Shown: positions 5,972 to 56,500 of the stretch, one piece after another
Position numbering within the stretch: the stretch's first letter is position 1
Layout: every line of letters starts with the position of its first letter
Position numbers and translations under genes: made by a program
The notes under the pieces: generated by a model
What the model saw: only the letters and a program-made list of their open reading frames with translations
Databases searched by the model: none
What the model was told of the DNA's origin: nothing
DNA from: Podarcis filfolensis
Taxonomy: Eukaryota
NCBI GenBank assembly: GCA_964270895.1
Contig: OZ185436.1
DNA: 64,000 bases
Strand: one strand, 5' to 3'

Positions 5972-6103
5972 ATGTCACGCGTTTCTCTGTTTCTGCTTTT
6001 CTCTTTTCACGCAGCTCTGAGCCTTAAAATCTGCTCTTTCAACGTGAGGTCATTTGGAGAAGCCAAGCGAACAAGACCAGAAATCTTGGATGTCATTGTA
6101 GAG
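5972..6103 (+). CDS. DNASE1L3: DNASE1L3 coding exon 1 (MSRVSLFLLFSFHAALSLKICSFNVRSFGEAKRTRPEILDVIVE)
   Basis: ATG at 5972, signal-peptide-like N-terminus, donor GAG|gtatgt, phase 0. Confidence 0.95.
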
Positions 6104-18100: not shown

Positions 18101-20611
18101 TGCCTTGCCCCTGGGTCGCTTGCAAATTCATCTTTGTGCTATCAAAACCCACGATGCTCCCTGCTCACCTTTTCTTTCTGACAGCAGCATATGTATTCTC
18201 CTCCTGCACAGCAGGCTAACACCCAGTGGTCTTGTTTTCGCCTCTTACAGGATTGTACTCCGTGGGGATAAACTCATAAATGCTGTTGTGCCAGACTCAG
18301 CCGGCATCTTTGATTTTCAGAGGGCCTTTTCGATGACTGAAGCACAGGTTTGTGTAAGACAGGAATAGTACACAAGCGGAGTGTTTTTGCGTTCTAGTCC
18401 TGCATCCGCCGGGGCTTGAGTCCACAGCTGCGCTGCGTCAAAACTGGGGAAGCAGACCAGTGAGAGAGGCAGGCAGCCAGTCGAGGGGAAACAAGCAGGT
18501 AGAGCCGAGAAGCAGGAAGAACCATGAGTTGAGAAATATAGGGAATCACATAACAGAATTCCAGGCACATCTGCACAGATAGACAGGTGTGTGCCATGTG
18601 TACAGCCAACATACTTCCATCACTTTATCCCCCACTGTGTTTGTCTACGCAAATCAGAGACCTGTGTGGATCATGCTGCGTAAACAGCTGGAGTAACACA
18701 ACTCCAACAACTGAGGAGCCAAGAACATGATTTATGTAGTACCTGCAGCTGCATCAGTGGCTAAACCATGAGCTGATAACAAAATACGCCACTTTAGAGC
18801 TGTACTTTGGCAGTCTTTAGATTAATGGCCTGCCAGTGTTTGAAAAAGAAAAGGTTCTGACCTCCTTTTTTACTCCTTTACCTAATCCTCAGACCTTAGT
18901 TGGCACAAAAGAGTCTTTGAGAAAGAGTATTCTTGCAAAGTATTGCTTTTATTCTTAAAAAGTCGTCTTCTCCAACCACCATCAAGATCGACAGCTTTTT
19001 ACACACACCAAACGCAACCAGCTTCCTACCATCCAACCAACCCACACCCAACACTAACATTGACCACTCTGTATATACAGGTACAATTAGGTGAAAGGTT
19101 GCATGAGTCATTGTAGGCCGCTGACTCATGCTGACTTAGTCCTTTTAGCATTAAAGAAACAGCGGCCAATTTTTAGCCGTGACATGGCCCATGTGCTCTG
19201 TCAGCGAGTCCTGCCACTGATAGGGCACTCCAACTAGCCCCTGCCCCCTAGTGTCCCTGGGAGGAGATAGAGCTCAGTGGCATAGCATCTGCTATGCATG
19301 CAGAGGGGCCCAGGATCATATAATTATAGAATCACAGAACTATAGAATTGGGAAAAGCCCTGAGGATCATCTAGTCCAACCCCTTGCAATGCAGCTGTCC
19401 TATACAGGGATCAAACTTGCAACCTTGGCATTATCGGCACCATGCTTTAACCAACTGAGCTGTCCAAGAAGGACTAGGGGGGGACTCTTGTCCTGAACCT
19501 GGAGAGCCACTGCCAGTCAGTGGGGACAATGCTGAGTTACAAAGACCAGTGGTCTGATCCTATGTTCTTGTGCACACACAGCAGGAGTGTCTGCAGGGAG
19601 GGAGACTTTGTGCAGGCTGCTACACACGCAATGGAGCCCATGTGCATCTAGAATCCTGATTGTGCAGGGCACAGTGGCATAGTGTGGGCGGAGCCACGGG
19701 GCACTTACCCTGGGTGCAAAATTCTTAGGGGCACAAAATTTCAAAAGGAAATAAAAATATTAATAAAAAATAAATAGTGGACCCTCCTGCTAACACAGAA
19801 TATCTCCCAATGTTCATGTGGATGGGCTGCGGAGAGGATTTGAGCTATGGCTGGTTGCTAGGGTGCCTTCTGCATGGGCTTTAGAAACATGACCACTCTC
19901 CCTTGGCCATGGCTGCCACTTGGGTTGGCTGCCAAGCTATTGCCCCTTCACTCCAGCCTATTGGCAGGCAGTGCCAAGGATACTTGCCTTGCCCCAGACA
20001 CTGGCAACCCATGCTATGCCACTGGAAGGATGTACAGATGGCAAGCATGGATCTAGGGTGTGATGTCATGGTCAGGACTACTCAGCACAGCCTTCTCACA
20101 TATTGGCAGAATGCACAAGAAGTTTCCCCGAAGAAGGCTAATGTGACATGGGGAAACCCACACTAACACAGTGCATTGTGCTGCAGTATTCACGATCTAT
20201 TCCCTGTGCTGTAATGTAGTAGAGCTCTCAGGTTGGTTGCATATTCCATATGTGTGCTTGTCGGACAGATGCATCCATAGCCTTCCTGAGCAATTTGGCT
20301 TTGGATGTTTGAAAGCATAGCAGCCAGATTTATTTGTGGCTTCCCTGGAATAAGGGCTATGCACCTCACTTAGGGGCTATCTTTGTGTGGCTTCATATAG
20401 CAACAAATGGCAATTACTCAACATAGTATGACTTTTAAATATTTGTGTGCAAGGGACAGGGTGTCCAATTAATCCACCTATTGTGTCCCTTACTCTGCAG
20501 GCTTTAGCAGTGAGCGATCACTTTCCAGTAGAGTTCCAGCTGAGAGCCAGCAGACATTCCCCAAGACGAGCAAGAGCAAGCAATCGTAGGCGCCTCTTGC
20601 AACAGGGCTAG
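5972..20611 (+). CDS. DNASE1L3: Deoxyribonuclease 1-like 3 (DNase gamma), complete gene: join(5972-6103,8371-8459,10392-10475,11687-11799,14135-14247,14961-15118,18251-18347,20501-20611), 897 nt, 298 aa
   Basis: Eight GT-AG-bounded exons join into one open frame with a signal peptide, ICSFNVRSFGE, MEIKD, KEQYAF, SREP, PLHTTP, MGDFNAGC, PYDR and VSDHFPVEF, plus a basic C-terminal tail. The gene is convergent with FLNB, as in human. Confidence 0.97.
7671..8008 (+). mobile_element. Sauria SINE, near full length
   Basis: tRNA-like head, BovB-like 3-prime end with an ACCTTT tail and an 11-bp TSD CTCTGGAAAAT (7660-7670, 8009-8019). Closely similar to the copy at 53200-53560. Confidence 0.9.
8371..8459 (+). 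CDS. DNASE1L3: DNASE1L3 exon 2 (VISQCDIMLLMEIKDNSNRLCPFLLEKLNG)
   Basis: Acceptor cctgcag|, donor GG|gtgaga, 89 nt, contains the catalytic Glu of MEIKD. Confidence 0.96.
9281..9760 (+). mobile_element. tRNA-derived (Squam3-like) SINE split by two later insertions
   Basis: Head at 9281-9360, middle agggctgggga at 9435-9445, remainder from 9688. The inserts are bounded by CACCAGTT and GCTGGG duplications. Confidence 0.6.
9446..9687 (-). mobile_element. RTE-clade LINE 3-prime fragment
   Basis: The minus strand encodes KGVIDFEDAQTQGEREK...(frameshift)...PHCGRTCGSRIGLHSHLR, the C-terminal zinc-finger-like end of RTE ORFs, followed by a (GAA)n tail. Confidence 0.75.
10392..10475 (+). CDS. DNASE1L3: DNASE1L3 exon 3 (HSQEKYSYMVSNRLGRRTYKEQYAFFYR)
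   Basis: Acceptor ttctccag|, donor AG|gtaagt, 84 nt. Confidence 0.95.
11687..11799 (+). CDS. DNASE1L3: DNASE1L3 exon 4 (SKMVSVKQIYQYPDLQPDDEDALSREPYVVWFSSPKT)
   Basis: Acceptor cttcag|, donor G|gtgaga, 113 nt, SREP motif. Confidence 0.96.
13355..13595. mobile_element. Tigger/pogo-like MITE
   Basis: TA|CAGTGGTACCTCG ... AGAGGCACCGCTG|TG; degenerate TIRs with a TA-type TSD. Confidence 0.75.
13699..13745. repeat. (GGAA)n microsatellite
   Basis: Read directly from the sequence. Confidence 0.95.
14135..14247 (+). CDS. DNASE1L3: DNASE1L3 exon 5 (VVREFVIIPLHTTPEMAVREIDELYDVYLDVRQRFKSE)
   Basis: Acceptor cttcttaag|, donor GAG|gttagt, 113 nt, catalytic His in PLHTTP. Confidence 0.96.
14319..14504 (-). 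mobile_element. tRNA-derived (Squam3-like) SINE
   Basis: Reverse complement has an agtagctcagtggtaag head and a ctagatgaaccattggtctgactc...aggcagcttt tail shared with 32272-32462. Confidence 0.65.
14961..15118 (+). CDS. DNASE1L3: DNASE1L3 exon 6 (NFIFMGDFNAGCGYVAKKHWKNIRLRNHTEFVWLIDDKTDTTVKASTRCPYDR)
   Basis: Acceptor ccttgtag|, donor AG|gtaaca, 158 nt, MGDFNAGC motif and the conserved Cys pair. Confidence 0.97.
15850..16310 (+). mobile_element. RTE-like LINE 5-prime region fragment
   Basis: gggaaggtagctcatctaggagaaggaaaactctgatcctaaacctccactgcc resembles RTE 5-prime sequence as recalled. No ORF support. Confidence 0.45.
16355..16780 (+). mobile_element. Decayed CR1 LINE 3-prime end
   Basis: Residual ORF2 (REKFFFLPQNTRIHGAPMELNIGRFGTDERMYCFTQ), a CR1 3-prime UTR and a cttatgttcttat tail. 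Confidence 0.7.
18251..18347 (+). CDS. DNASE1L3: DNASE1L3 exon 7 (IVLRGDKLINAVVPDSAGIFDFQRAFSMTEAQ)
   Basis: Acceptor ctcttacag|, donor CAG|gtttgt, 97 nt. Confidence 0.95.
19261..19569. mobile_element. Nested SINEs: a minus-strand tRNA/CR1-tail SINE (about 19315-19466) inside a plus-strand Squam3-like SINE
   Basis: Outer head at 19261-19314 and outer tail at 19467-19569. The inner copy reads tggacagctcagttggttaaagcatggtg...ggttggactagatgatcctcaggg...ctatagttctgtgattcta on -. Confidence 0.65.
19672..20024. mobile_element. Non-autonomous DNA-transposon-like element
   Basis: Perfect 11-bp inverted termini CAGTGGCATAG ... CTATGCCACTG; no clear TSD. Confidence 0.5.
20501..20611 (+). CDS. DNASE1L3: DNASE1L3 exon 8 (ALAVSDHFPVEFQLRASRHSPRRARASNRRRLLQQG*)
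   Basis: Acceptor tactctgcag|, catalytic SDH motif, TAG at 20609-20611. Confidence 0.95.
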   Translation, partial: ALAVSDHFPVEFQLRASRHSPRRARASNRRRLLQQG

Positions 20612-25788: not shown

Positions 25789-25852
25789 TTGCATATAAAA
25801 TATTGTCATAATCACTGCCACCTCATTTCTGACACACCCTTCACCAGTACGT

Positions 25853-26235
25853 GGGCATGTTTAGCCTGGAGAAGAGGAGGTTAAGGGGTGATATGATAGC
25901 CATGTTCAAATATATAAAAGGATGTCACATAGAGGAGGGAGAAAGGTTGTTTTCTGCTGCTCCAGAAAAGCGGACACGGAGCAATGGATCCAAACTACAA
26001 GAAAGAAGATTCCACCTAAACATTAGGAAGAACTTCCTGACAGTAAGAGCTGTTCGACAGTGGAATTTGCTGCCAAGGAGTGTGGTGGAGTCTCCTTCTT
26101 TGGAGGTCTTTAAGCAGAGGCTTGACATCCATATGTCAGGAGTGCTCTGATGGTGTTTCCTGCTTGGCAGGGGGTTGGACTCGATGGCCCTTGTGGTCTC
26201 TTCCAACTCTATGATTCTATGATTCTATGATTCTA
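25853..26235 (+). mobile_element. CR1 LINE 3-prime end (ORF2 C-terminus, 3-prime UTR and (ATTCTATG)n tail)
   Basis: ORF GMFSLEKRRLRGDMIAMFKYIKG...LEVFKQRLD is uninterrupted, with an octamer tail. TACGT occurs on both sides. Confidence 0.93.
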
Positions 26236-26848: not shown

Positions 26849-27168
26849 TGTTGTTGTTTAGTCATTTAGTCATATCCGACTCTTCGTGACCCCATGGACC
26901 AGAGCACGCCAGGCACTCCTGTCTTCCACTGCCTCCCGCAGTTTGGTCAGACTCATGTTTGTAGCTTCGAGAACACTATCCAACCATCTCGTCCTCTGTC
27001 GTCCCCTTCTCCTTGTGCCCTCCATCTTTCCCAACATCAGGGTCTTTTCCAGGGAGTCTTCTCTTCTCATGAGGTGGCCAAAGTATTGGAGCTTCAGCTT
27101 CAGGATCTGTCCTTCCAGTGAGGACTCAGGGCTGATTTCCTTCAGAATGGATAGGTTTGATCTTCTTG
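26849..27168 (-). mobile_element. BovB (RTE) LINE 3-prime fragment
   Basis: ORF MRREDSLEKTLMLGKMEGTRRRGRQRTRWLDSV...WRALVHGVTKSR and a (CAA)n tail. Confidence 0.93.
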
Positions 27169-32627: not shown

Positions 32628-32763
32628 CAGGCATCCCCAAACTCAGCCCTCCAGCTGTTTTCGGATTACAATTCCCATCATCCCTGACCACTGGTCCTGT
32701 TAGCTAGGGATGATCGGAGTTGTAGTCCCAAAACAGCTGGAGGGCCGAGTTTGGGGGTGCCTG
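32628..32763. mobile_element. 136-bp palindromic hAT-type MITE
   Basis: TIR CAGGCATCCCCAAACTC..., TSD GTCTAGAC / GTCTAGAA. Confidence 0.9.
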
Positions 32764-34765
32764 GTCTAGAAGCAGCCTGTTATTCAGTCCATGGATCGGC
32801 ATAAGCTGAATCGCAGGACTAAGTTGTGGCTTTACTGAGAGCAGATAAAATATCAGCAATATATATCCACATGGACTGAAATTTTCATCCCTTATTCCCT
32901 GCTGGCCCATTGGACAGCATTCCTGTAGTAAATCACAACACTGAAAGTATATTTCATGTTACTATCAAATTTCAGTCAAGTGAGACATAAGACACTATGA
33001 AATTATTCACATATACTTGAAAAAGAGCCACCTTTTAGATACATTAGCACACATAAATTTATGGTTCCATCCACTAAATTTATTTTGCAGCTCTTTTGTT
33101 TTATGCTATTTTGTTCTAGTCAAGTGGTCTCTGTGGAGCAGTGAGTCACTGGATCTCTTCGACTTCTCAAGCAAACAAAGCCAAGAAAGAAAGAAAAATT
33201 ATCACCACCCTGGTTCCGGATCAAATAGGGAGAGTAGCTGAAGTTACAAAGTCCATTGTATGAGTGTATATAGAATGAGGGTAACACAAGCTGTGAGTTG
33301 CAGCAGCACAGTTTGTCTTGGCTCCAGGGAGCACCTTCAATTTTTCGGGTATCTCAATTTTCATATAAAATACTTGTATGTCATAGCTGTGGAGACAACC
33401 TTGAAAAGCATGCCTGCCTTATGCACCCCTAAGAGCATGAGCACCCACACAACCCCCCATTTTAATTTTAAATCTCATGTTTTTCAGCCAGGCTTGTTTG
33501 AGCTGCGAGTAACAACAGAGCTTTTGTTCACTCTCCTGGCTGTAACGCAGCAGTTGGGAGCAATGGAGGCCTGTCAGCAAAAAGCTTTCGAAACAAGGGG
33601 CATTCTGAGGCGGTCACGACTATTCTATGGAGTGGGGAATCACATATCTGAAAATAACCCTTAGAAAAACAAGGGAATTCTGGTAGCCCCAAGTTCACCT
33701 CACTTGGGGGCCTCTGTCCCCTGCAGGCAGCAACCTTGGCTCATGGATCGATTTCCTGCTCAATCTGAGCTTTGCTGTGGATATGACACACAGCAAAGCA
33801 TGGCTTTCTCACATGATCTTTTGAAGAAACCAGGGTACTCTCACAAGTCATTCACATCCATGCCTGAAGAGCTCTAGGAAAAATAGCAAAAACCACAGAG
33901 CTACCCGTCTCCGAGGGCTGTGTCCTGTGAATTTTTGCTCACCATTAGTTCGTTGTCTCCATGACTGATCAGCTGATCAGCATACCCATGTCTGACATAC
34001 ACATAATTGCGGCTATAAATTCCTCATGGTCTACCTTTATTATACAAGTGAATGATGGGTTCGCTCCCATGAGTGAAAATAGTAAAGTCATTGTGGTACT
34101 CCACCCCGCGTCTAAGAAGCAATACAACAGCTCACACAACCTCCAGGGAAGAATACGATAATGTACCCAATCACTAATGGAGCAGACTTGGTCCATCTAG
34201 TCCTATACTGTTTACTCTGACTGCCAGTTGCCCTCCAAGGCCTCAGTCAAAGGTCTTTCATAGATCCACTACCTGGAGAACTGGGAATACTTTGTCACAA
34301 AAGTTTTTGTTACAAACCTGCACCCTTTTTGAATTTCAAAGCAGTTCTCTAACTTCATCTTGGTATAAACTGTGATAGGTGCTTTTAAAAAAAAATCAGC
34401 CTATGGCAGGTCTTCTTTCAAGGTGTCACCACAAAAGGAAACCATCACAAGAAACATCACAACAGCCATATGAATTAATTGGCTCTAAATCAGACTCTGG
34501 TCCCAAATGTATGCAAGGTTGTATACACATCCTTGACACAGAACCCAGTAAGTTACTCTGCCGGAATGATAGGTGCTGTGCATCTGTTACACAAGAAGCA
34601 GTGCTACATGCTACAGGGAAAGGAAGGCTAGAAGCAAGTTCTAAATCTGAAAGAGTAATTATGGAGGGAAGTAATTATAGAGGGTTGTCTGATCCAATAC
34701 CACAACAAATACCCATGCTAGGCAACATTGCACAAACATTTCCACATGTCAGTTAGCAATAATAT

Positions 34766-34884
34766 TCATGACAGCTTGTCAGTTTTTGATGGATGATAGA
34801 AGATTCCGTTTTTGAAGTAGAAAGTATCCTTTACAATTCGGGATTTGCCATGGATTGGTGTCCTCATGTCCTTAACCACGTCTC
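34766..34884 (-). CDS. SPMIP1-like: SPMIP1-like coding exon 2 (119 nt to TGA)
   Basis: Acceptor atttatttttccag|GA, frame-compatible with exon 1, encodes the family-type FYxKNGIF C-terminal motif. It is too short to appear in the ORF track. Confidence 0.82.
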
Positions 34885-37326
34885 CTGGAAAAATAAATGT
34901 GTAATTGAGCATTAAAAATTGCATGCCTAAGATAACCTAAAGCAGAATGCCAGCTGCCACATGATGTGATTTTCAGATTCCGTTACAGAACAGTCACAAT
35001 TTGCAAACTGATAAGCAAGGAGCAGTATAAACCTGTCATCCATTTCCTGGATTTGGTGAAATCATCACCAGGCATTTAACTGACTGCCATACAAACCATC
35101 ATGAGTTCACCACCTGTAGCTGTGATGACTACATTGCCTTCCTGGGGCTGCTCAGGTAGTTCCGCCTATGCTGTAGATAGATAGATAAACTTTATTCGCA
35201 TTAGCCAACAGCCATAGCAACATAAAACAAGCAATATATACAATTAAAAAGACAAAAATGGTTAAAAAGGGCTATCAAATGACCAAGATTATCATTCAGT
35301 TGCCTGCGTTTACAATTGGCTAACGCCAACATGTGCTCTTAACTGAAGAAGAAAGCACTAAAACCTGTTTGGGTCTTTTGGAATGAGGCTGATAGACCTG
35401 AAGAGCTGCAATGCTTTATAGCTCCCACTGAACAAAACTCTGCTCCATAAAACAATAATGCACAAAACAGCAGCTTAGTTCCACTATTAATAAAAGATAT
35501 AAATGCTTAGATCAGGCATAAGCAAACTCTGCCCTCCAGATGTTTTGGGACTACAACTCCCATCATCCCTGACCACTGGTCCTGTTAGCTAGGGATGATG
35601 GGAGCTGTAGTCCCAAAACATCTGGAGGGCAGAGTTTGCCTATGCCTGGCTTAGATGATGGCAAACTTTTTCCCTGTCTTGTAATAGCAGCAGACTATAC
35701 AGAAATTCAGCAAGTGCACCCTTGCCCATCATTTTATCTTAAAAGATTCACCTGCCTAATTTCTACCATTCAGGGGGCAGGCAGGCAGTCATTTCCTCCA
35801 AGGAGCTTAAATATGGCTTCCCCCTCCTTCCATTTTATCCTCACAACCACCCTATGAGGCAAGTTAGGCTGAGAGATGGTGCCTGACCAAAGATTCATGA
35901 CTGCATGGGGATTTGGACTCTGAAGTGGGGCCTGTAAAGGTGTCGTCATCCCAGGCAAACACCACCAGCTTGTGCTTCACTTTATTTAGTTCTTACTGTT
36001 TTGTATTTCTTCTTAACACTTACGCTCAGAGCAAAGTCACCATGTAAGCAAATGAAACATCATTCAGACTCTGGCATACAGAACTAGATTGGCTTCTGTC
36101 ACCGTGACTCACGGAATAATGCTTTGCTGGGGGCTTATGCAGAATGAAATAGGAAGGCTGCTAAGTGGTAACAGATAGAAAGGCAGGCATAGGGCAACTA
36201 GAGCAAGCGGAAGGCACAATTTAGCTCCCGCGCCTCAAAAATGCATTTCTGAACAAAGCTTAAAAGGGAGGGTGACCATGTGGCCTACTTTCCAGAGGAC
36301 AGTCCTCTACTGAAGAACAGTCTGCTCCAAAAGAGACAGACGTCAATGGAGTTGTCAGTCAACAACTGATACCTGGTCACAGTCTTCCCATTTGACCTAT
36401 ACTAATTATTGTCAAATTTGCAAACGTATAAATTGCCTTATGCTAAATACTGCGCCGATTTCTGGCCTCTTTTGAGGAGATACATTTCCTCGGGTTTTTT
36501 GCCAATGTGTAAGTGGGCCACCATATTTAAAACTGTTCAGGAGCTGGCATGTGTGCATAAGGAAAGACAGACAGCTGTCAGGGACACATCCTGTTAGTGC
36601 CCTATGCCTTCCCAAATCTGCTAGAGATCAGGGGAAGTCCTACAACAAATTTAAGCGTGTCATGGCGGGGGAGATTACATATGGACAACAGACAGCGCTA
36701 CACTGCATTCCACCCTAATAATTTTCCCTCACAAAGACAATTAAAGCGGGGGAGGCAGAAGCAACTTGAAATATTTCGTCGTCACTGGTGAAGCATTCTC
36801 TTAAGCCTACTGCATGCCTCTCATGCTCTGGGATCCATGCAACAGCCATTACTGGTTCATTACTCTTACCTAAGCGCCAGCCATATTCCCATGACGACAG
36901 CACTGGGTAGCAGAATTTCTCCTCAGGGCTCTTCATCTTCCTCTGCTTGAGGTAGTGGTTCCTCCCTTTGCCTTCATGGGAAAAGCCCTGGTATAGCAAC
37001 TGAGTTGTCTGTGGCGTGGGAACCCTCATCTCAGGAAGAGGCTCCTGAAGGCTTGGGCCTTCCTCCTCCTGCTTCTTCTCCTTCCCTGACAGCTGCCGCC
37101 TGTCCTCTTTTTGCACAGTTACTTCTTGACACCGGAGGGAGCTTGCACTCTTCTCAGGAGGGCAGATGGCAGGCAAGAAACACTTCCTCTTGGCGACCCC
37201 ATAGTCAGTCACCCGCCTGGGGTATTTGTGCCCGTATTTTGCCTTCCAGCTGACCCTGCAGGAGGCCTCCTTGTTAATAAGCTCCCTCCAGCCATCTTGC
37301 TCCCGTGTGGTCAGCAGACCCCTCAT
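34766..37326 (-). CDS. SPMIP1-like: SPMIP1 / ATP6V1FNB-family sperm microtubule inner protein-like gene, join(complement 36870-37326, 34766-34884), 191 aa
   Basis: ATG in a good Kozak context (ggggccATGA) at 37326. The N-terminal W-x-E-x4-E...W-x2-KYG pattern and the EMR-P...LLYQGFSHEGKGR..YL..R....PEEKF.YP..SSWEYGW block are typical of the SPMIP1 family. A GT-AG intron (TTAG|gtaaga ... tttttccag|GA) joins in frame to DVVKDMRTPIHGKSRIVKDTFYFKNGIFYHPSKTDKLS*. Family recognised from memory; orthology is not established. Confidence 0.85.
35513..35648. mobile_element. 136-bp palindromic hAT-type MITE (in the SPMIP1-like intron)
   Basis: TIR CAGGCATA.GCAAACTCTG, perfect 8-bp TSD GCTTAGAT. Confidence 0.92.
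36870..37326 (-). CDS. SPMIP1-like: SPMIP1-like coding exon 1 (457 nt)
   Basis: Part of the ORF at 36715-37377, with a phase-1 donor immediately after SSWEYGWRL-G. Confidence 0.85.
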
Positions 37327-37464: not shown

Positions 37465-37474
37465 TGTGTGTGTG

Positions 37475-37502
<28 letters not shown>
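37465..37502. repeat. Compound (GT)n(CT)n microsatellite
   Basis: Read directly; about 140 nt upstream of the SPMIP1-like ATG. Confidence 0.9.
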
Positions 37503-37505
<3 letters not shown>

Positions 37506-39239
37506 ACACACCCCTCCTGCAACTAGGTGACTACAAGGCATAAAGCTGCGTTGGAAGGGTTTGTTTTTGGTGAAATGTTGAAAACCTTAGGTGGGCTTCT
37601 TTGCAGCTACAATTGCCCGACAGGTGGAATTAGTTACCTTACAACCTAGTTGGGGCTTTGTAACTGAAGATCGTAAATCAAACTGAAAGTAAAGAACCTT
37701 GCCCTCCTCACCCTTCCCACTTGTGCTGACTACAGAGAATATTTACACCTGAGAAACACACAAGTGTGCACACACACAAATAGTGATTTAACAAAAACAC
37801 TTGGTTGGAAAAAACAAAAAAAAAATTTCCTTCCAGTAGCACCTTAAAGACCAACTAAGTTAGTTCTTGGTATAAGCTTTCGTGTGCATGCACACTTCTT
37901 CAGATACACACTTGGTTGGAACTTCTGTAACTTGGTTGGAAGTTAGCAGTCCATCTTGAATGCAAGTTGTGCAACAAGCAAGCAGGGGATTTGCCAATCT
38001 TCATTTCCCCGATTTTAAGTTGCATTGGACTCAACCCAAAGAAAATCAAAGCCAAACTCAGCGGAAGCCACAAAAAGTTAGATTGGCTACCATTCCATGT
38101 GGTGCCTGTGATTTCTCTCTCTGAAACCACAAAACTGGCTGTGTGCCCTTGCTCAAAACCCACCCTGGGGTTTGGGTGCGTAATACAGCCCCAAAGCAGG
38201 CAAGTTTTGACTGGCTCTCTGTGTGTTACACAAAGAATTCAAACACCTTCTTAAAAGCCCCCTGCCTCACAATGCAGTAGTCATAGTGATAGCTGAAAGG
38301 TAGCACAGTAGGGGGATAAATCTTTTTCACAGAAATGTATATAGCATACAGCTACAGAGAGGAAATTAAAATGCATGCAAAGGTACTCTCTCTATCTTTC
38401 TTGTCCCGTGGTCTTAATTTGAGCAGTTGCCCTTTAAAAGCAAAGCATCTTAAAATAACAGAATCAAAAGCATTTGTAGCTGAGAGATGGGTAAGGCAGC
38501 TGTATAGAGATGAACTCCATGCCAGCCATTTGGTTTCATCCTCTAATGCTTTCATCGCAATGCAAGAACTACCACACCCATAAAGAAATGGGAAAGTTTC
38601 AGACCTCTGGAGTTAAGCCATAAATTATAAGATTCAAATGCCAGGCCTCCACCCAAGTTTCAAAGAGTACATAGTGAGTAAACTAATATAAAGAGGAGAG
38701 AGAATATTCTGATGAAATTCATAACACTGAACTTTGAAACTGGTGTGTGTGCCTAGGAGTGGCATGGAAAACAGTGAAAGCTTTTGTATGTAGCTCTAGC
38801 TATTAACTGCCCACAGATGTGAGAATCTGACATCTATTAGAAAACATGGCACAGCCCTTTTAAGCTAGGGCCACAGTGGAAGAATATTAGCACCGAAAAA
38901 AGAACATTGCAAACAAAACAAAAACAGCAATCATTACTTCTGGTTCGATGGTAGCATTAGTTACAAAGACTGATAAATTCCACATACACTGTCCATCACC
39001 CATAGCTCAGAAGAAGGGTGCATTCTATGCAAGCAGAAATCTTGGGTTCCATTCCTGGCATTTCTGGAGCAGGTTGGAAAAACTCCTGACTAAAATGCTG
39101 ATGAGCTGCTTCCATGTCAACACAGCTCAGGCTTTTTCAACCTGCTGCCCTCCCAATGTTTTGTATTACCAGCTCCCACCATCCCAAACATTAGCCATGA
39201 TAACGGGTGAATATGAGTTGGTAGTCCAAAAAAACAGGA

Positions 39240-41366: not shown

Positions 41367-41554
41367 TTAGGGAACTGTAACGTGGAAGGGGCTTCCAGGA
41401 ATGTGTTCTTCACCCCACTTCACGGCTAGAATATAGTCACCCTTCTCCTTGACGACGTACTTTACATCGTACTGTTGGTTCCCAAGGTGTTTCACAGATA
41501 CTTCTTCACAAGGAGTTGTAGGTCCATGGACACCAACTAACAACATATTTGAAC
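41367..41554 (-). CDS. FLNB: FLNB last coding exon, dimerisation repeat 24 ([19 protein letters not shown]...FHVTVP*)
   Basis: ctgccttag|, TAA at 41369-41367. Confidence 0.97.
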
Positions 41555-44500
41555 CTAAGGCAGAATGAAGAGCGTTACTACCACACCCCAAATTCAAACA
41601 GCTCCAATCCAGCTTTACTAAATATTTTGACTAATCAGACTCAAAGTTAAGAGCCTTGCTAGATCAGGCCAAAGGCTCACTTAACCCAGCGCCCTGTTTT
41701 TCACCAAACAGGTGCCTATGGGAAGTTGGGATGCAGAATCTGAATTCACAGCACTTTCCCCATTTGAGAGTCCCGTATTTGGGTCCAGAGACATACTGCC
41801 TCCCACAGTGGAACACAGCCATTACGGTCAGTAGTCTTTAATAGTATGCTACTCATGGAGGATAATGCTATTTGCAGGGCAAGGTATTTCTGCAGAGAAA
41901 AAGCACTGGGCAAAATTCATCAAGTAAACCTTGCTGACTCCTGTGCAAGACAAAGAATTCTAGTTCTTTTCTTAGCAGTTCATCTTTCGATCAGGCTTTC
42001 CCAAACTTGTGTCTCCAGCTGTTTTTGGACTACAAATCCCATCATCCCTGACCTGCTAGCTAGGGAAGATGGGAGTTGTAGTCCAAAAACAGACGGGAGA
42101 CCCAAGTTTGGGAAAGCCTGCTTTAGATGCTCTTAAATGCTTTGTAAAGCGGTGGGAGATCCAACATTCCACTGCCAATGGCAATTGAATACTTTTCTCT
42201 GGGGCGAAAGAGGCACTAAAGATTTAGTGGACACTTACAAGGTGGAGAAGCTCAGGTCTTTGGTCACTGGACCAGTAACAGAAACCCACATTTATTTATT
42301 TTTTAAAAAAGGAAGTTACCAGCTTTGCTGCAGTCGACAGAAAATGTGTTTTTCTGGCCCACGAAAGCTCTAGAGAGCCCTGCTCCCGTGGAGATCACTC
42401 TGCTTGCATCAGATGAAGATCTGGGAATGGCACTATAGCAGGTATCCGTTGTTGACCTGGTCACAGATTCCACCATGATGGAGGATGTTTCATTGGACAC
42501 ACCTGGGCTAACCAGCCGCTGGCCTACAGAGCAAGAAACCAGAGGACAGTTTAAACAGTGTGGCAGTACCCCTGCTGCTAAGTGCAAGAGCAAAATGGCT
42601 ACCGTCAACTAGATGCCAGTCAAGTCAAAGACACTGTGCCACCTTGGGAAAGTCCATCTCTCTGCACCCACCCTCCCGCTGAGAACACAACCAGGTAGGT
42701 AATACTGGCTCACGAGTCTTACCTGTCACTTTTGCTTTGAAAGGGCTGCCGGCTATGTGATTGGGCCCTCCGTATTTAATTCCAATTAAGTAGTTCCCTG
42801 GGGCCATAGGTGTGTACATTACATGGTAGCCCTCCAGAGCTTCTTGACAATCCATTTTCACCTTTGACGGCCCCTCTATTGTAACAGCAAGGGTTCCAGG
42901 GCCTGCTTTGGTGGTGTCTATAGTAAATGCCGATTGTAAGCCTGGAAAGCAAAGGAGAAATAGGAAGCATGGGTTCCAAGACTAACCGTTTGTCACGTCA
43001 CACTTTCATGCAGCAATCTTGTTTGCCAAGTATATGTCATGGATACAGCCTCCCACCCCGCAACAATCTGCCATTGCAAATTGTGTATTTTTTTAATAAT
43101 TTTAAAAAAAAACCCAGACCACTTTCTCAAGAAATACCCAAAGTGAGTCACGACCATGAATCAATCAAAAAAGCAAATACTCCAAAAGATTTAGAAAAAA
43201 ACTTGTCCCACCTCCTAATAAAAGCGGCCCTTTCTTTGATGTCTTGCGATCACAAATTTCACACTTTCCCATGCTGTTGCACAGGCAAGTGCAGGCACCC
43301 CCTACCTGCGGCCCTCCAGATGTTTTGGCCTACAACTCCCATGAACCCTAGCTAACAGGACCAGTGGTCAGGGATGATGGGAATTGTAGTCCAAAACATC
43401 TGGAGGGCCGAAGGTTGGGGGTGCCTGGGCAAGTGTGTGAGGACAAGCAAAAAGCAAAACAAAACCTAGAACGATTGATGAATGCTTCTTCTAAGGTGGA
43501 ATCTACACACATATAAAAATGTTCTGAAAATGCTTTCCTTTAAAGCGTTTTTAAAAATACATTGAATTTTCCATAAGGCTCCCCATTGCCATCTAGTGTC
43601 ACATTGTACAACGTTTTATTTGCAGCTGTATAGCTGAGTCCTAAGTGCAGCCAGACCATCAGTAAGTAATGTTTGGCTGTGTGGAACCCATTACAGCTTG
43701 ATCAATAGCAAGGACCCAGCCCAAAATGTTAAGCATCAGCGCTGGCAAATGGGTATGTTGCCGGTAATACTGACAACTCATCTGTCGAATTTCAGTTAAT
43801 TTCTCCCTCTAAGGGCCTCGGGAGATATAAACAAGCACTACTCCCATGTGACCCACTGAAAACTACACAGGCCAGAGATGGAGAGCCTGTGCCCCCCCCC
43901 CCCCGCAAACTGATGTTGTGGAACTCCCAACAACCCCAGCCAACATGACTAATGGACAGGAATGATGCAACTGTGTGATAAACTGCTAAACTGAATTGTT
44001 CAAATCAATTCAGCATCCATTTCTGCATTTTCTTGCATATTAGCTTTCCCCTGTTTTAACTGAAATGAACCGAGACCACCACCCATTTCAAAACATATTG
44101 GCTGAGCCTATTAAAGGTATAGCCCAATTGTACACACCAGACAGAAGAGTGTTAGCTAGTGAGACAAAGGCAATCTCTGGGTCAAGACCATCCTATTTTT
44201 CAGAATTCTAACGCAGAAAGAGGAAACCACTCACCTGTTACGCCACTCTCAAGGCCTGGCCCATAGGCGGTGACAAGAGCTGGGCTATCTGCTTGACCTG
44301 GTTCCCCGACTCTAACTTTAAAAGGACTGCCTACCACATGGCTACCGTTGAACTTCACATCAATAGAATGAATGCCGTTTTCACGCGGGATGAACCGAAC
44401 AGCGTATTTATCTGCAATACATATACAGGCAAATCATCATAAATTTAGGTTGAGAACTTGATGTTAAAAAGCAGAGCACACAGCATCTAAAACTATTTCT

Positions 44501-47500
44501 ATGACTGCCATGTCTGGGCCGTGGGAAGGTGGCACATGGAACATGCCTGAGGAGAAGCAAAGCCTCTGAAATGCAATCCTCATGTGGAGAACATGCATAG
44601 GAGTTGGAGCTGTCACCTTAAAATCCATTCTTATTGCTTTAACCACCAGCGTGCTGCAAAATGGTTATCCACTTGCACTGGTAGAAAACTGCATTTCTTT
44701 ATTATACAGCAAATATTATAATTATAGCACAATTGAGTATAGCTTGTTCCTTTTAATCAGTGACTAGTCTGAAAACTGTCTAGGAAACATAGAATACTAG
44801 AATGGTAAATCTGCATGGTTAAAAGTAGCTAGAAATGGCTGTCAAAATGTAAGGCCAATTTAAACAAATTGGCACCAGCATCAGATGAGACCCTGTTGGA
44901 ATCTACCTACAGGTATACCATGTATTTTCAAAAGTGAAGGATGAGGGGAGAAAGAGTTAACGAAAATGTATAGGGCAGGATGGAAAGACAGGAGCCATTT
45001 CAGGTAGCTAGAGTTGAAATATCTACAGCAGGCTTTCTCAACCTCGGCCCTCCAGATGTTTTGGCCTACAACTCCCATGATCCCTAGCTAACAGGACCAG
45101 TGGTCAGGGATGATGGGAATTGTAGTCTCAAAACATCTGGAGGGCTGAGGTTGAGGAAGGTCTACAAGTAGGATTATAACTTTTCCTTGGTCCACTATTT
45201 AGCTAAAAGTTGTGAAGCAATCTCCCTACTGTGCAGAAAGATGCACATGCAGCCATTCAACTGAGCTATTAGCACATGCAACCTCATGCACACCTCTGTT
45301 CACAGGAGGACTTCCTCTCTGCACAAACAAACAACAACTGGGGTTGTGGTAAAGTGCACGTGCCAATTAGCCTTAAAATGGGTTATGCAGAAGTATTTTG
45401 TTCAGTACTTCCTTTTTTCCTTTTACCACCAAGGAAGTAGTACTAAACTCCTTTGTGGAACACAGTCCTTTGTACAATAAGCATCCAATCACTGTTGAAC
45501 ATGTTTCTATACTGGCATGAACTGAAACGGCCACCTCCTGTTTAATTATTACAACCATTTTGACTGTTCACATATTTAAAGCAGTTTTGAGTACCAAGTT
45601 TACGACACATCCTTACCTTGCTCCAATTCAGAAACATGGCATTCTTCTACGGCTCCAATTGGGCTATGCACTTTAGCGTCAATCTTGCCCTTTGCCCCGT
45701 TAAGCCTTATAGCGAAGGATGCTGGCTGGTTAACCTTCAACCCAGACTCCTAACAACGCAATAGTAAGATCCTCACATACATATTGACATTTGACTTGCA
45801 AGGAATATATAACAGTCCAGTCCTTTACTGCCTCCAAAATATAGCAGCAGCTTTGCATATTTTGTCTAACACAGAACCAATATTTGACACATGGTAGCCC
45901 TGTTATTGCATCACAGAAGTTATGGTCGTGGAAAAACGTTATCAGTCTCACTATTTACAAAAATGTGTCTGACACAAGCACCCTTAACCCTGCTATATGT
46001 TATGCTTTTCTCAATTGAGTATTCTCATGTCTTAAAACTAGGAATATTTTTTATTTTTAACTTCCTAGTTCTGAGGGTTCTACAAATAACAACACTTTGG
46101 AGGTTCCGAGCCGCAAGGTGGTTAGATTGGTCTCAACTAGGGCCAGGGCCTTTTCAGTACTGGCCCCGACTTGGAACACTCTGTCACAAGAGACTAGGGC
46201 CCTGCGGAACTTGACATCTTTCTGCAGGGCCTGCAAGACAGAGCTGTTCTGCCTGGCCTTTGGTTTGGACTCAGTCTGACCCTCCCTTTTGGTTTTGATT
46301 TATGGGCTACTACTAAAATGAGGCTGCATTTTAAATGGTATTTTAACCCGTATTTTAATTAACTGTTGTTTTCTCCCCCATTACGTTTTATTGCTAGCCG
46401 CCCTGAGCCTGGTTCTGTCCGGGGAGGGTCGGGTATAAATAAATTATTATTATTATTGACTAATTATATTCCTGAACAGCAGTACAATACATTCCCAAAG
46501 TGTGGGCTTGGTTAAGTTTGTCTACCCACACACTTTTTCTGATCTGACTATAAATGCGCAAGGTCATCATTTTGCTACAAATGTAGGGTGCCAGCCCAAA
46601 AAATCATCAAATGCATCAGCTTTAAAACAAAATGCTTGTGCTGCCCAAATCTTTATGGTTGTCTGGGCTGCATTTGCTTTGCTATACTCCCAAAATCACT
46701 TGAAATCTCTTTTCCTAATTGTGTGGCTAACTCATTAACATGCTGCCAAAAACAAATTTAAATATTGCATCTAGAATTAAGCCTGGAGCTTTCTGATTAA
46801 GCAAAGCATGATTCACCCTATGCCAGCCAATACAACATTTGGAGATTTCTGTTAACACGCCAGCAAAGGTGGAACCAAAAGCATATATCAGTGCACACCT
46901 GCTCCCCAGTAGCAGTCACCACACATACAAAAAACCAGAGTCTCCTGGTGTTATGCATGTGTGATTCCCGCCCCCAGCCTCTGGAAAATTGAAGTTCCAT
47001 CAGAGAGAGGGTTGCTGGAATGCTGCGCTTTTGCTTTCAGTGCAGAGCTTACCTTAATTTCCACTTAACAGTTTTATCCTCAAGAGAGAAATAAACTGAA
47101 ACAGGCAGCTAAAATACACCAAGGAAGTTTTTTATGGAGTGCCAAAAGACAACTTTTGTAAAAAGATTACTCCTCCCCCCCCCCAAAAAAATATCAGTTT
47201 TATTTCCCTCTTCAGGGTTTAAGTCAGCTGACACCACACATTCTGTCAAGAGTCTTTAAATGAAACACAAGAAAAACATCAGTACCAGCAGCTAATTATC
47301 GTCCTTGTAACTCCTTGTTTTAAGTTCAGCTCTGGCTAGAAAGTTACACCAAATGTCAGTCTATAAAACCATAGTTCTGAAAAGCAGTGCAATTTAACTA
47401 ATACTGCTGGCCTCAAGCTGCAGCAAATCTACACATGATGGGCTGGATGACACTCAATCTGAAACTTCCAGGCTTCTTATTTTAGATTAAAGACAGTCAC

Positions 47501-50500: not shown

Positions 50501-53500
50501 GAATGAACTGGTGTGAAACACGGGACAATCTCTCCAGACATATAGCCATTTGGAACCATGTAACTATGAGAAGGCAATAGGGGGAAAGAAAGGAAGAGAA
50601 GACAGGAAGACCAAGATTGATTAGAGCAGCAGAGAAAGAGACAGAAACAGACGTCAGAATATGTATTAAACTGAAACGGCATGCTGAATATATTCTGTAT
50701 ATTAGTGCATTCTATGAGCAAGATAGCATTTATTCTTTAACCAGCCAATTATTTTATGTGTCTCCCCCAGTTAGATCCACATGATACAGATCTCTATAGC
50801 AGCGACTACGCTCCTACCCTTCTAAAAATATGGCTGAAGGTAACTCAAGCATTACAGTACTCAAGGACAACCTTCTGAGATCATCCTAACACCCGTACTT
50901 CACACATAGCATGAATGAATGAATTCCCAGAACAGAATTTTTGGGCATATTGTTCTTCATCCAGTACTGCTGTGCTACAGTGAGTTAAGCCATGGTTTGG
51001 CTTAACATGTAGCCCAAACTCAAGCTCATGGTTTGTTTCCTCTAGACAAACCATAAACTGTGAAACCAGGAATAAACCTTGGTTAATAAAACAAATCTGG
51101 GTTCAGCCATGTGCTAAGTCAAATTGTGGCTTAGACTCAAGTAGATTGGCAGCAGGAGGAAGGTCTAAGAGGCAAAAATAATTGTATCATTTTGAATAGC
51201 CTGTGCATTCACCTTAAGTCCAGGTTTGGCTTAGCATTACACTGTGAACCAGGTCACTTGTTATGAGAACTGAGTCAGTGGGTGATGTGCTAGAAAGCAA
51301 AATTGAAATGCCACGGCTGCTTCATGGGGCCTAGGAAGAAATGGGCGTGAGTCCTACCATGCAAACAATGCCTTCCCTGATCTCTAGAATTATTTGGATA
51401 ACATTCCATTTTTAAATCTGATTGCAAAGAATGCCCAGAAGATTCAATGGCTTATTGGTTTATGGTTTCCAAAACAGTAAATGTATTAGTAGAACTAACT
51501 TACCTGGAATTTTTAAGTTAAGATCACACAAGCTTCCAACCGTGGCCACAGAAGGAGCCCGCCGAGTACGTGTAATGCTTTCCTTCACCCTTCCTTCCCC
51601 ACTTATTTTCACAGTGAATGGGCTCCCTGTAGTTAGTAGAGACAAAACAACATTGAGTTCGATCTATCAGTACAGAAGCATAAAGAATTTCACAGGAAAT
51701 AAAGTAGCATATCGTCTACTAATAGTTATTTCCACTACCATCTTAGAATTCTTTCCCACTGAGGAAGGCTGGACCGCTGCATTGTTAACTAAGCACATGA
51801 AGCATAAGACTTATCAGCGATGACCATCAAGGAAGTCCCATCTTCCTACACAGGTTAACTTGCTATTTACACACATTCAGCTTTACATGCTTCACGAATT
51901 TTAAATTAAAGGCGGGGCAGGTGTCCAGGGAAAAAAAGGCTTTGGCAATCCCACCCACCTATGACCCCAATGTATTTTGACTATACATGATTTTGGCTTT
52001 GCAAGCTACACCCTAGAACACAACCCCCATGTAAGTTGAGAGTCACCTGCACCAAACGAATATTCTAGTTTGAGTAGCAAAGAGATAAGTGTTACACTGC
52101 AGCAGGAGACAGCCCCTCAAACAAAAGCATCTTCAAGGTGCGCAAGAAGTTTATTATCCTGCCTTCCAAAATTTAGCAGTCAAGCTTCTTCAGGCATTTT
52201 CAGAACATGAAGGCCCTGGTGGGAAGCCTAGATAGTGTCCTATAGACTCTGCACTTATTACAAGAGGTTGGCGCTGATGGGGAAGTGGACCAGCAATGGC
52301 TCGCTTGCGTAGGCTTCTTTTCTCTTACCTGGGATGTGCTCATCAGCAAACTTAGTAGATACTATGTAGACACCAGGTACAGTTGGAAAGTACGAAACTC
52401 TGCAAGTTCCATCCTCTAGATCTTCTGTCTGGATATCTACTTTGCTAGGTCCTTCAACTGCCAGCGATATCCCACCATAACCTAGAAAAGAAAGCAGCTG
52501 GGGTGAGTGCAAGCAGTTGTGAAGAGCTCCAATGAGCACTGCCTAAATCTTGATGGACGGCTTTACGGATTGCAGTCATTGTATATTAACCATTACAAGT
52601 GAGCCAGCCATTTCAGCTCATGGTCACATATGGGATTTTGCTTGATAAGCTGCTTGTAGTATAGACCTGTGAGTTTCAACCTATATAAATTTGCAGATTG
52701 ACAGAGCATCCAAACCTGTTCTACATCATGGCAACCACAATTTACAAGTCAGAGGCAATTTTGTTCTGCTCAGTTGCTGTGATGATCAGAGAACGGCAAC
52801 AGCAGATCAACCACATCACAGGTGGGCAACCCGCAGCCCACAGGCATCCCTTAGATACTCTCTGGCAGCCCAGGAATCCCAGTACTGACCTGCATCTCTT
52901 GTATCTACAATGAAGTCACACATTTCAAACGTGCGTCCTTCGACCAAGCCACGTCCAGAAACCCTTGCTCTGCTCGCATCACCAATCTCAGACTGGACCA
53001 CCATAATGGACACCGGACTGTTGGGGACATGGCTCCCATTCTTCATAATACTGACCAGGTGCTCTCCCACCTCCCGTGGAATGAATGAGATACCTGCCAG
53101 ACAGAGGTTAGCAGCAAGACAAATTTGTAACTTCACACTTTATCTTTTTGCCCCCCTTCCTCCACACACATTGTCAAATCACAATACAGAACTGGAAGAT
53201 AGGTAAAGGTAAAGGTAAAGAGACCCCTGACCATTAGGTCCAGTTGTGACCCACTCTGGGGTTGCAGCGCTCATCTCGCTTTACTGGCTGAGGGAGCCGG
53301 CGTACAGCTTCCAGGTCATGTGGCCAGCATGACTAAGCTGCTTCTGGCGAACCAGAGCAGCGCACGGAAACGCCGTTTACCTTCCCACCGGAGCAGTACC
53401 CATTTATCTACTTGCACTTTGACGTGCTTTCGAACTGCTAGGTTGGCAGGAGCAGGGACCGAGCAACGGGAGCTCACCCCGTCGTGGGGATTCGAACCAC

Positions 53501-56500
53501 CGACCTTCTGATCGGCAAGTCCTAGGCTCTGTGGTTTAACCCACAGTGCCACCCACATCCCTGGAAGACAAATATTATTTGTGGCATCAAAATCCTACTC
53601 TAGCCACAAATTAAAAGTATTATTTGATTCCAACCGTGGCCCAGGCTCACAAGCTTCCCAAGAGCACCCTGCCAGCACCACACAACCAATACAGCAGCCT
53701 CCCTAGAAGATGATTAAGACTTACCAATGTGGTTATTGGGTAGCCTTTTCAGAAGACAAGGTTCATCTCGGCCAGATGGGGCTTTAATACTGGCTGTCAA
53801 GAGGCTAAGATCAGTCTCATTAATGTCTAACAGGAAGTCAGCAGCAGAGCCCAGTTTAACTTGAGATTGCTTCCTATTGTCATCTTTAAGAAGGAAAATT
53901 TCCCATTAGGACTTTGGATTAAAACACTACTAGGTATTAACATTACTGGATCTTAACATTCTGGGCAAACCATCCAAATTCCTCTCCACTTAAATTTACA
54001 AAGAAAGCATCGATGAGAATCAGAAGACATGTGTGCTGCTTACATATGCAAATTTATGCTCCACGAAACCAGGACTCTAGTGGACAGTAACTGGACAACA
54101 CTTGACAGCTCAGAAGTTATTGCAGGGAGCCTTTTGTTTCTGCAGTTCATACTAAATTACTGGGCAAAAGCCAGCTAAACACAACATGACTTCATCACAC
54201 AGCATGGTTAAAAACAAGTTGTCAGTTCTCCGTCTGCAGTCCACACAGAGTATGAGTAATTTTGTAAACTTTGTAAATATGTAAATTAATGCTAAATGCA
54301 ATGGATTGCAAACACAAAGCTTTTAGGCCCATCGTAGCTGTTTCAAGTGCTCCTCGTACCTGTGATTTTGGCAGTGAAAGGGCTTCCTGGGATGTGTTTG
54401 TCATTGTATTTGACTAATATACTGTAGTTTCCTGGAAGAGTTGGCAAGTAAGTCACGGTGCAAGTGCCATCCTTGTTATCAATGCAACTGATCTCTGCCT
54501 TGGAGGGACCTTCAATTGCTAGGTCCAAGCCACCTGTCACGGAGAAAAAAGTGTCACGGAGAAAAAAGTGCCACAAGAATTCTCAAACTTACATTTTTCA
54601 AGACATGGTCTGAAATAAAAATCAGTGAACTTCAATTAAGAACCAAGTTGCAGTTCCAGATGTGGGGAGCCCTGCTTGGATTGAGTACCACGGCTAGCCC
54701 TCTGAAGATTTCATTTGTCATATTCAAGTGATCTTCAAAAATGTTTTATTGGGAGTGAAAGCAAGCAAATTTGAATTAAGGGGAATTAAGTCTGTGTCAA
54801 ACTGACTGTGATCAGCTCTGAATTTCCTGCTGCAAACAAGGGGATGGACTACAAGGGCAGTAAGACGCTGGGTCCCAACACTATGGCTCTATACAGAAAC
54901 ATCTACGTTTCTCCTAAAGGAGGGTTCAGTGTCCAGAATCGTATTTGGATTTGCAGGTACACATCCAAGCTCAGCCACAAAGCTCACTTCGTGGCTTTGG
55001 GTAGCTCTCAGCCTAACCCATCATTAGGGTCACCATAATGTTAGATGGGACAGTTGTAACACATCATGTAATCTGCAAAATGCTTCAGAAGTACCATCTG
55101 TTAGTGATGCTATGTTGAACCACGCACTGGTATATTTATGGATCCCTAAAGTTACTGGGGAAACGAAGAAAATGATGAATTATTTCTATTCGCCCTCTAT
55201 GAAGTCTGATTACAGAATCCGCCTCGGAATTTAAATTTTGGGGCATGCTTACATGGAAGTTAAATATTGCACCAAAAAAATCAAACAGGATTCATGTCAA
55301 GTAAATTCTTCAGAGACTACGGAATAGACCACTTACCCTCACCAGCATCTTCTGTGACTATGGTAAAGGTTGCTGGCTTGTTTGCTACACCATAGACAAG
55401 GCCAGGTCCATAAGCAGTTACGTTTCCACTGTTGGGATAGTTCACATAGAACTGTAGAGGGCTCTCTGCAAAGGTTGAAAAACTATGCATAAACACACTT
55501 GAGATAGGATATTTAAATTATTTCAACATCTTTTTGTACATCTCTCCAAAGAGAACGAATATAAATTTGTGTGTTTACTCAGCAATTTAATACGTCTTAA
55601 GCTTGCACACACAATTTTTTTTCAGTTCTTCCCTATATTCCATTCCATATGACAGAGAATGCTATGTATTAAGACCCCTGCTATATAAGACCAAGATCTT
55701 ATATCCAGCATCCATTTGCCACAGTGGCTAACCAGATGCTTATCTAGGAAACCCACAAGCAGGAGGACATGGGGGCAATCGCTCTCTTGTGCTGCAGTTG
55801 TCCAGCCATTTATATATGGAGGCATGATGCCTCTGATGCTGGAGAGCCTTGCAAGAAATTAAATGCAAGATCCACTGTCAATCATGAGCATTTAGGAAAG
55901 TTTTCAAGCATCCTGCTCAGTTCCAGTAACTTTATCCTCCTCTGATTTCAGTGTTTCACTGGTTTCCATTTAGGTTTCACATTTATTCACCGCCCCAAAG
56001 TGTACTAGAGCACTCTAGAAAGCCTACTACTGCAAATAATGAACATATGCAGCACCCAACCCTCCACCAAAGTCTCCCACAGGAATTTGCCTTACACCTC
56101 CCAGCTTATACATCCACACAACAGGGACTCCAACCGTCCCGTGCAGTTGCTTTCTACCAGCAAGCAAACAGCAGGTCCTCAGTCATGCCCATGTAAAGGA
56201 TCCTATTCCTTACAAATTTATCAACTGGTTGCTGCCAGTGAAGTTTGAGTTTGCCAGAGGTTCACTAAGCCAGTCATCACGGAGCACATAAAAAAAGCCA
56301 ATGCTATTTTTTTTATAATAAAAAAAGTCCAGATTTATGCAGAGACTGTTCTTGTGGCTGGGACTTAACTGGCGCTTCTATTTCTAGCTCTGCCACAGGC
56401 TTCAAAGCTGAAATAGCTGAATGTGTCCCTGTCCCCAAAAAGCTATGAGCCGGCTCCAGTTTGTCTGGATGTGCCCCAGTTCAAGGAACAAAAAGCCCCT

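Follow-up and report, generated by a model that had tools for sequence, protein, structure and literature searches.

A two-exon gene of the SPMIP1 family lies between FLNB and DNASE1L3 in a 64,000-nucleotide stretch of the genome of the lizard Podarcis filfolensis (GenBank assembly GCA_964270895.1, contig OZ185436.1), referred to here as the window. We consider it highly probable that this locus is an intact and constrained paralogue of SPMIP1, belonging to a FLNB/DNASE1L3-linked group that we call B-type, for which an origin in the two rounds (2R) of vertebrate genome duplication and a place in the B-tubule are inferred. The other group, called C-type, contains the classical SPMIP1, one of the sperm-specific microtubule inner proteins (MIPs) found by recent cryo-electron microscopy of sperm tails. 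The results show that two SPMIP1 genes are ancestral to vertebrates, and the copy that has remained unnamed is the closer of the two to the invertebrate protein.

Gene model and family membership

The gene is encoded on the minus strand by two coding exons (37326-36870 and 34884-34766) with an intact frame. Exon 1 (36870-37326, 457 nt) starts with the ATG at 37326 and comprises 152 codons plus one base; its translation, MRGLLTTREQ...SSWEYGWRL, covers the N-terminal helix block, the variable linker that follows and the beginning of the SPMIP1 domain, as far as SSWEYGWRL. The single phase-1 intron (34885-36869, 1985 nt, GT...AG) is placed five residues past the YGW motif and has canonical splice sites, with GT at 36869-36868, AG at 34886-34885 and a pyrimidine-rich tract before exon 2. 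Exon 2 (34766-34884, 119 nt), whose translation is DVVKDMRTPIHGKSRIVKDTFYFKNGIFYHPSKTDKLS, contributes the C-terminal end of the SPMIP1 domain in 39 codons, including the glycine codon divided by the junction, and ends with a TGA stop at 34766-34768. Together the exons give 191 codons and a stop. The N-terminus MR(G/D)LLTT is kept in all vertebrate relatives, which confirms the ATG at 37326 as the start. The nearest canonical AATAAA (34036-34041, minus strand), 725 nt past the stop, is a candidate polyadenylation signal, and a compound (GA)n(CA)n microsatellite is found at ~37465-37510, 140-185 nt before the ATG, where the promoter or the 5' untranslated region is presumed to lie. The window contains no runs of N.

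Residues 75-152 of exon 1 match positions 15-94 of the Pfam SPMIP1 profile (PF22589) with 105 bits (cut-off 32.1, E 4e-30), and exon 2 matches positions 95-122, the alignment running on from exon 1 without a gap. A match contiguous across the splice is not what chance would give, and it therefore lends independent support to the gene model. A first-pass annotation had described a clean two-exon gene of 191 amino acids with a characteristic core; its coordinates are exact to the base, and the core, LLYQGFSHEGKGR..YL..R..PEEKF.YP..SSWEYGW, is present in the exon translations. The tubulin-binding SNYG-type motif of the family, S-x-x-Y-G-W, here in the form SSWEYGWRL, follows a G.GR..YL..R...PE.KF block (GKGRNHYLKQRKMKSPEEKF), and G121, R122, Y125, R129, P134, G149 and W150 are invariant in an alignment of 72 sequences.

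The intron position is also that of the family. The junction lies at residue 153 and YGW at 148; the seven B-type loci for which both exons were mapped share this offset, as does the C-type locus of sloth. The boundary in the C-type gene of the sturgeon Huso is less precise, the tblastn pieces overlapping there, and a single exon was mapped in each of the gharial, Podarcis and Narcine loci (the last exon in Podarcis and Narcine). The two exons were searched separately, and the Lacerta agilis protein P0001, to which exon 1 is 95% identical, served as proxy for full-length comparisons. Exon 2 is conserved in turtle, gharial, gar, sturgeon, stoat and bat (tblastn).

Two groups of SPMIP1 proteins in vertebrates

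When exon 1 was used as query in a word-indexed protein search, one-to-one counterparts came up in more than 20 squamates as well as in turtles, crocodilians, gar, sturgeon, coelacanth, newts, bats and stoat; NCBI calls most of them 'protein SPMIP1' or 'protein ATP6V1FNB'. All these counterparts, the window gene and the sea urchin protein share the B-type motif SSWEYGW, in place of which the mammalian chains in the PDB have the C-type motif TNFTYGWQL. An exhaustive profile search gave 524 relatives, the top 150 being mostly invertebrate and B-type; the classical type came to light through a single marsupial protein, bilby P0151, an SPMIP1 of the mammalian kind. P0151 as query led to the classical group in placentals (including primates), marsupials, monotremes, tuatara, many squamates and turtles. 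Both types occur together in the squamates Rhineura, Elgaria, Heteronotia, Eublepharis, Candoia, Python and Varanus, and also in Carettochelys, sloth, sand rat, hedgehog, manatee, coelacanth and sturgeon, in at least 12 species in all. Goat, sheep and many rodents encode B-type.

The distribution is patchy. Among 129 relatives of the stoat protein (predicted protein sets, shared-word search), Euarchonta are represented by mouse lemur and tree shrew only, and none of the 129 is a B-type protein of an anthropoid, marsupial, monotreme or bird. This absence is in keeping with the loss in humans that the first-pass annotation had thought possible. Birds have no protein in either the B-type or the C-type hit lists, and crocodilians have none in the C-type list; as for amphibians, the lists contain frogs as C-type only, newts as B-type and axolotl as C-type. 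These gaps may be real losses or may stem from annotation and search.

The relationship of the two groups was analysed in a tree of 63 proteins (IQ-TREE, LG+C20), in which the window gene was included as exon 1 only, together with Lacerta P0001. The B clade (support 100/97) contains shark, coelacanth, ray-finned fishes, newts, a caecilian, placentals, turtles, crocodilians and squamates; within it the window gene is sister to Lacerta (100/96). The C clade (97/91) contains sturgeon, a teleost, coelacanth, lungfish, frogs, axolotl, mammals, tuatara, turtles and squamates. Neither clade includes Ciona, Priapulus or Saccoglossus, and the branching inside each clade is that of the species tree. Constraining the squamate FLNB-linked proteins to group with the classical SPMIP1 of amniotes costs 75.6 log-likelihood units and is rejected by the approximately unbiased (AU) test (p-AU 2.6e-19). 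The ATP6V1F-linked protein of the electric ray Narcine has a long branch and is placed near Ciona in the free tree; constraining it to the C clade is not rejected (p 0.164), so that synteny and sequence are without conflict. Since B includes a shark and C a ray, the duplication predates crown gnathostomes, and it follows the split from tunicates.

Accordingly, the window gene does not fall in the orthologue group of human SPMIP1: it belongs to the other clade and is not beside ATP6V1F. It falls in the FLNB-linked B-type group, both by clade and by its arrangement, in which FLNB is followed on the same strand by the gene and then by a convergent DNASE1L3. The first-pass annotation had proposed precisely a second, FLNB-linked family member that is not the orthologue of human SPMIP1, and the B clade, the AU test and the conserved linkage all bear this out. 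The contrary outcome that it had named beforehand, grouping with FLNC-linked SPMIP1 as the sole squamate copy, failed on both counts, by the AU test and by the seven squamates with two copies.

Linkage of the two paralogues

In shark, sturgeon, gar, lizard, stoat, bat and sloth, the B-type gene adjoins FLNB, DNASE1L3 or both. In stoat, the gene named 'ATP6V1FNB isoform X1' has a 2633-aa filamin on one side and a convergent 304-aa DNase-type gene on the other, and the last exon of this filamin is of FLNB type (137 vs 104 bits). The same layout, with a FLNB-type filamin and a DNase, is found in gar; a 2633-aa filamin is upstream of the B-type gene in bat, and a convergent DNase is beside it in sturgeon, shark and sloth.

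The C-type gene adjoins ATP6V1F in Podarcis muralis, the sturgeon Huso, the ray Narcine and sloth. In sloth the order is FLNC - ATP6V1F - SPMIP1 - KCP-like gene, and the filamin is assigned to FLNC (136 bits vs 103 for FLNB). One sloth assembly holds both paralogues, on different chromosomes. In Podarcis muralis (locus L007, 2693-7758 and 22493-25596), the classical SPMIP1 and ATP6V1F are arranged divergently, with a tetratricopeptide-repeat gene after SPMIP1; no filamin exon is present within 10 kb, unlike in sloth. The ATP6V1F-SPMIP1 region of this lizard may be rearranged, or it may simply be more spread out in lizards.

Selective constraint

For exon 1, the ratio of nonsynonymous to synonymous substitution rates (dN/dS) is 0.21 between turtle and gharial, for which dS is unsaturated (0.68), 0.23-0.26 between lizard and turtle or gharial, and 0.46 between stoat and bat. 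By block, it is 0.07-0.31 in the N-terminal (1-35) and C-terminal (from 99) parts and 0.3-0.7 in the linker. A functional protein made of two binding modules joined by a spacer would be expected to evolve in this way.

Structural comparison and proposed mechanism

Sea-urchin SPMIP1 is listed as a B-tubule MIP that repeats every 48 nm at protofilaments B07-B10, and residues 2-35 and 104-187 have been modelled (PMC11834534). In the SNYG module, the motif and an associated helix touch the inner surface of tubulin (PMC10973386). Against the PDB, the best match of Lacerta P0001 is the sea-urchin chain in 8snb (129 bits, E 1.8e-36, residues 4-181), followed by 8otz (72 bits) and 9v10 (66 bits); exon 1 of the window gene gives 81 bits with 8snb, 58 with 8otz (bovine) and 54 with 9v10 (mouse-type). 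The segments modelled in sea urchin are the two conserved blocks of the lizard protein. An AlphaFold model of P0001, built on the alignment of 72 sequences, has a mean predicted local distance difference test (pLDDT) score of 59.5; residues 7-34 form a confident helix, the linker is disordered, and the short helices at the C-terminal end are only weakly predicted. This outcome is typical of a protein that becomes ordered only on the lattice.

By homology to these proteins, the B-type protein most likely belongs to the B-tubule lumen of flagellar or ciliary doublets. In the axonemal doublet microtubules it would repeat every 48 nm, and its N-terminal helix (~7-34) and its C-terminal SNYG-type module (~99-191, with SSWEYGW) would bind the inner surface of tubulin across neighbouring protofilaments, the disordered and fast-evolving linker (~36-98) connecting the two. 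Its expression in testis is likewise presumed.

Neighbouring genes and repeats in the window

The last coding exon of FLNB, encoding Ig24 and ending in a stop codon, is contained in an open reading frame at 41367-41597 on the minus strand; among the human filamins in the PDB it is closest to Filamin-B (2eed, 129 bits, vs 103 for FLNC and 99 for FLNA). Filamin exons occupy the minus strand from 41367 to the end of the window, and FLNB thus ends 4 kb upstream of the SPMIP1-family gene, on the same strand. On the other side, exons of the DNase I family are found on the plus strand between ~5.9 and 18.4 kb. A first coding exon with the signal peptide (~5972-6133, plus strand) and a late coding exon (~18210-18353, plus strand), both with approximate boundaries, are of DNASE1L3 type, scoring 27 and 31 bits, respectively, with DNase gamma (7kiu) vs 21 bits each with DNASE1. 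The setting given by the first-pass annotation was right in having FLNB upstream on the same strand and DNASE1L3 on the other side, with the small correction that DNASE1L3 is on the plus strand and convergent with the gene.

Several repeats were noted. An element resembling a miniature inverted-repeat transposable element (MITE), with 58-nt arms that are 97% complementary and a 20-nt loop, occupies 35513-35648 (no strand assigned) in the intron, outside the coding gene. At least four further hairpin-like relatives are found at ~32638-32753, 42013-42091, 43311-43408 and 45047-45145, the copies elsewhere in the window including ones within FLNB introns or the FLNB 3' region. Near-identical open reading frames at 7682-7918 (plus strand, in the DNASE1L3 region) and 53316-53558 (minus strand, in a FLNB intron) derive from one interspersed repeat, probably a short interspersed nuclear element. 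Two further open reading frames resembling retroelement tails, at 25851-26150 (plus strand, RAVRQWNLLPRSVVESPSLEVFKQRLD) and 26870-27070 (minus strand, RRGRQRTRWLDSV), are likely fragments of long interspersed nuclear elements; both lie in the 16-kb gap that separates DNASE1L3 from the SPMIP1-family gene.

Discussion

The timing and the linkage lead us to infer that the B/C split originated in whole-genome duplication. A single ancestral gene, which Ciona, Saccoglossus and Priapulus still have as one copy, would have duplicated before crown gnathostomes, most likely together with its filamin neighbour in the 2R events; one copy would then have been kept between FLNB and DNASE1L3, as the window gene, and the other beside ATP6V1F/FLNC, as the classical SPMIP1. 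Both the date of the duplication and the fact that each copy closely follows a filamin paralogue of its own fit 2R. The outgroup proteins score higher with B-type than with C-type almost throughout, and judging from these scores the FLNB-linked copy is the more conservative of the two. We propose more tentatively, and with somewhat less than even confidence, that B-type, and not the gene now called SPMIP1, continues the ancestral flagellar MIP of the B-tubule in conservative form and serves as the main SPMIP1 in the sperm of fish, amphibians and reptiles, that mammalian SPMIP1 is its faster-evolving ohnologue (a paralogue from whole-genome duplication), and that B-type is lost or unannotated in anthropoids and possibly in marsupials, monotremes and birds.

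Other explanations of the locus have been considered. The name 'protein SPMIP1/ATP6V1FNB' that NCBI gives to the gene in many squamates would suit an orthologue of human SPMIP1 translocated in squamates from the ATP6V1F/FLNC region to that of FLNB, but squamates keep a second, classical copy, which is beside ATP6V1F in Podarcis muralis, the FLNB/DNASE1L3 position is common to shark, gar, sturgeon and mammals, and the AU test rejects the corresponding grouping, so that this explanation has practically no probability left. A squamate-specific duplicate is ruled out by the tree, the AU test and the synteny. That the reading frame is a relic, conserved in appearance and silent in this species, could be argued from the distance of the nearest AATAAA from the stop; it is very improbable in view of the intact frame, the canonical splice sites, the 95% identity to the Lacerta protein and a dN/dS of ~0.2-0.26. 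The paralogues could also have arisen by a small-scale duplication in an early vertebrate, their positions beside filamins being secondary or coincidental. The non-filamin neighbours do differ (DNASE1L3 vs ATP6V1F and a KCP-like gene), and no third or fourth SPMIP1 copy was found; however, each copy follows closely, on the same strand, a filamin paralogue of its own, and a split after the tunicate divergence and before crown gnathostomes fits a block duplication, which makes a small-scale event unlikely.

A more serious alternative concerns function. An intact B-type protein might not be sperm-flagellar, having instead become specialised after the duplication for another motile cilium (airway, oviduct, ependyma or embryonic node) or for a microtubule role outside the axoneme. 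High-resolution bovine and mouse sperm doublets list the classical SPMIP1 only, although goat, sheep and many rodents encode B-type. On the other hand, B-type is the copy closest to sea-urchin sperm SPMIP1 and to the single-copy genes of invertebrates, and the solved structures of airway and other cilia in the PDB are without a B-type chain too. We regard such a role as rather unlikely, while giving it more weight than the other alternatives.

Several observations weigh against an FLNB-linked paralogue of 2R origin acting in the B-tubule of sperm. No sequence from lamprey or hagfish was identified, and the link to 2R is made by timing and filamin linkage. FLNA, FLNB and FLNC are ohnologues, a point of general background for which we found no paper, and FLNC was seen directly next to a C-type gene in sloth alone. 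The solved structures in the PDB include no vertebrate B-type chain, the bovine and mouse sperm doublets being of C-type only, and B-type could act in another type of cilium or at another site.

The existence of an intact, constrained FLNB-linked SPMIP1 paralogue has consequences for naming. NCBI names both paralogues SPMIP1/ATP6V1FNB even within one species (sloth, Rhineura, Erinaceus). B-type entries of Phodopus, Jaculus and teleosts bear the Ensembl-derived names of the mouse gene Gm45521 and the zebrafish gene si:ch211-193l2.10, and these two predicted genes, of the same clade and protein type, are taken to be orthologues of the window gene. In Sigmodon hispidus, a 192-aa B-type protein (P0321) is mislabelled 'filamin-B isoform 4'. 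A search of the available library found no paper on Gm45521, si:ch211-193l2.10 or an SPMIP1-like/ATP6V1FNB-like gene. What is new here is the recognition that two ancient SPMIP1 paralogues are conflated under one name; the gene models themselves were already known. The description of the gene as a 'hidden' paralogue in the first-pass annotation is thus apt in that the shared name hides its separate identity, and inapt in that the gene is predicted in dozens of genomes.

B-type is retained in most vertebrate classes and in many placental mammals, including rodents. A distinct gene symbol is warranted for it, and naming based on orthology is affected. The paralogue may buffer the loss of Spmip1 in the knock-out mouse, and therefore knock-out phenotypes and unassigned densities need reinterpretation. 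Comparisons of sperm axoneme composition should treat B-type and C-type as separate genes. If B-type is indeed the conservative, main SPMIP1, orthology tables and structural annotations that equate the 'SPMIP1' of sea urchin or fish with human SPMIP1 would be wrong in detail.

Comparison with known systems

The locus is probably an example of ohnologue retention with lineage-specific loss; it is not a new kind of system. SPMIP11/TEX49, CIMIP1 (LLC1/C20orf85), CFAP144/FAM183 and CFAP90 share the short S-x-x-YG motif and the associated tubulin-contacting helix (PMC10973386). The window gene scores below the Pfam cut-offs of other MIP families with the SNYG module (19.9 vs 25.9, 16.8 vs 27.3 and 11.5 vs 28.9 bits) and is therefore a member of none of them. 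Much closer is the classical mammalian SPMIP1 (8otz, bovine sperm doublet; 9v10), which has the same PF22589 domain, N-terminal helix with SNYG-type module and intron position, and a length of 176-190 aa vs 191 aa for the window protein. It differs in being only ~30-35% identical to B-type, in having TNF(T/I)YGWQL where B-type has SSWEYGWRL, and in belonging to a separate ancient clade with its own ATP6V1F/FLNC locus. The closest resemblance is to sea-urchin SPMIP1 (ATP6V1FNB, 8snb chain 1i), whose SSWEYGWRL and RIVKD.F..NGIF blocks are nearly identical to those of the lizard protein, although the linkers of the two are unrelated. As a single-copy gene from before the duplication, sea-urchin SPMIP1 is co-orthologous to both vertebrate paralogues.

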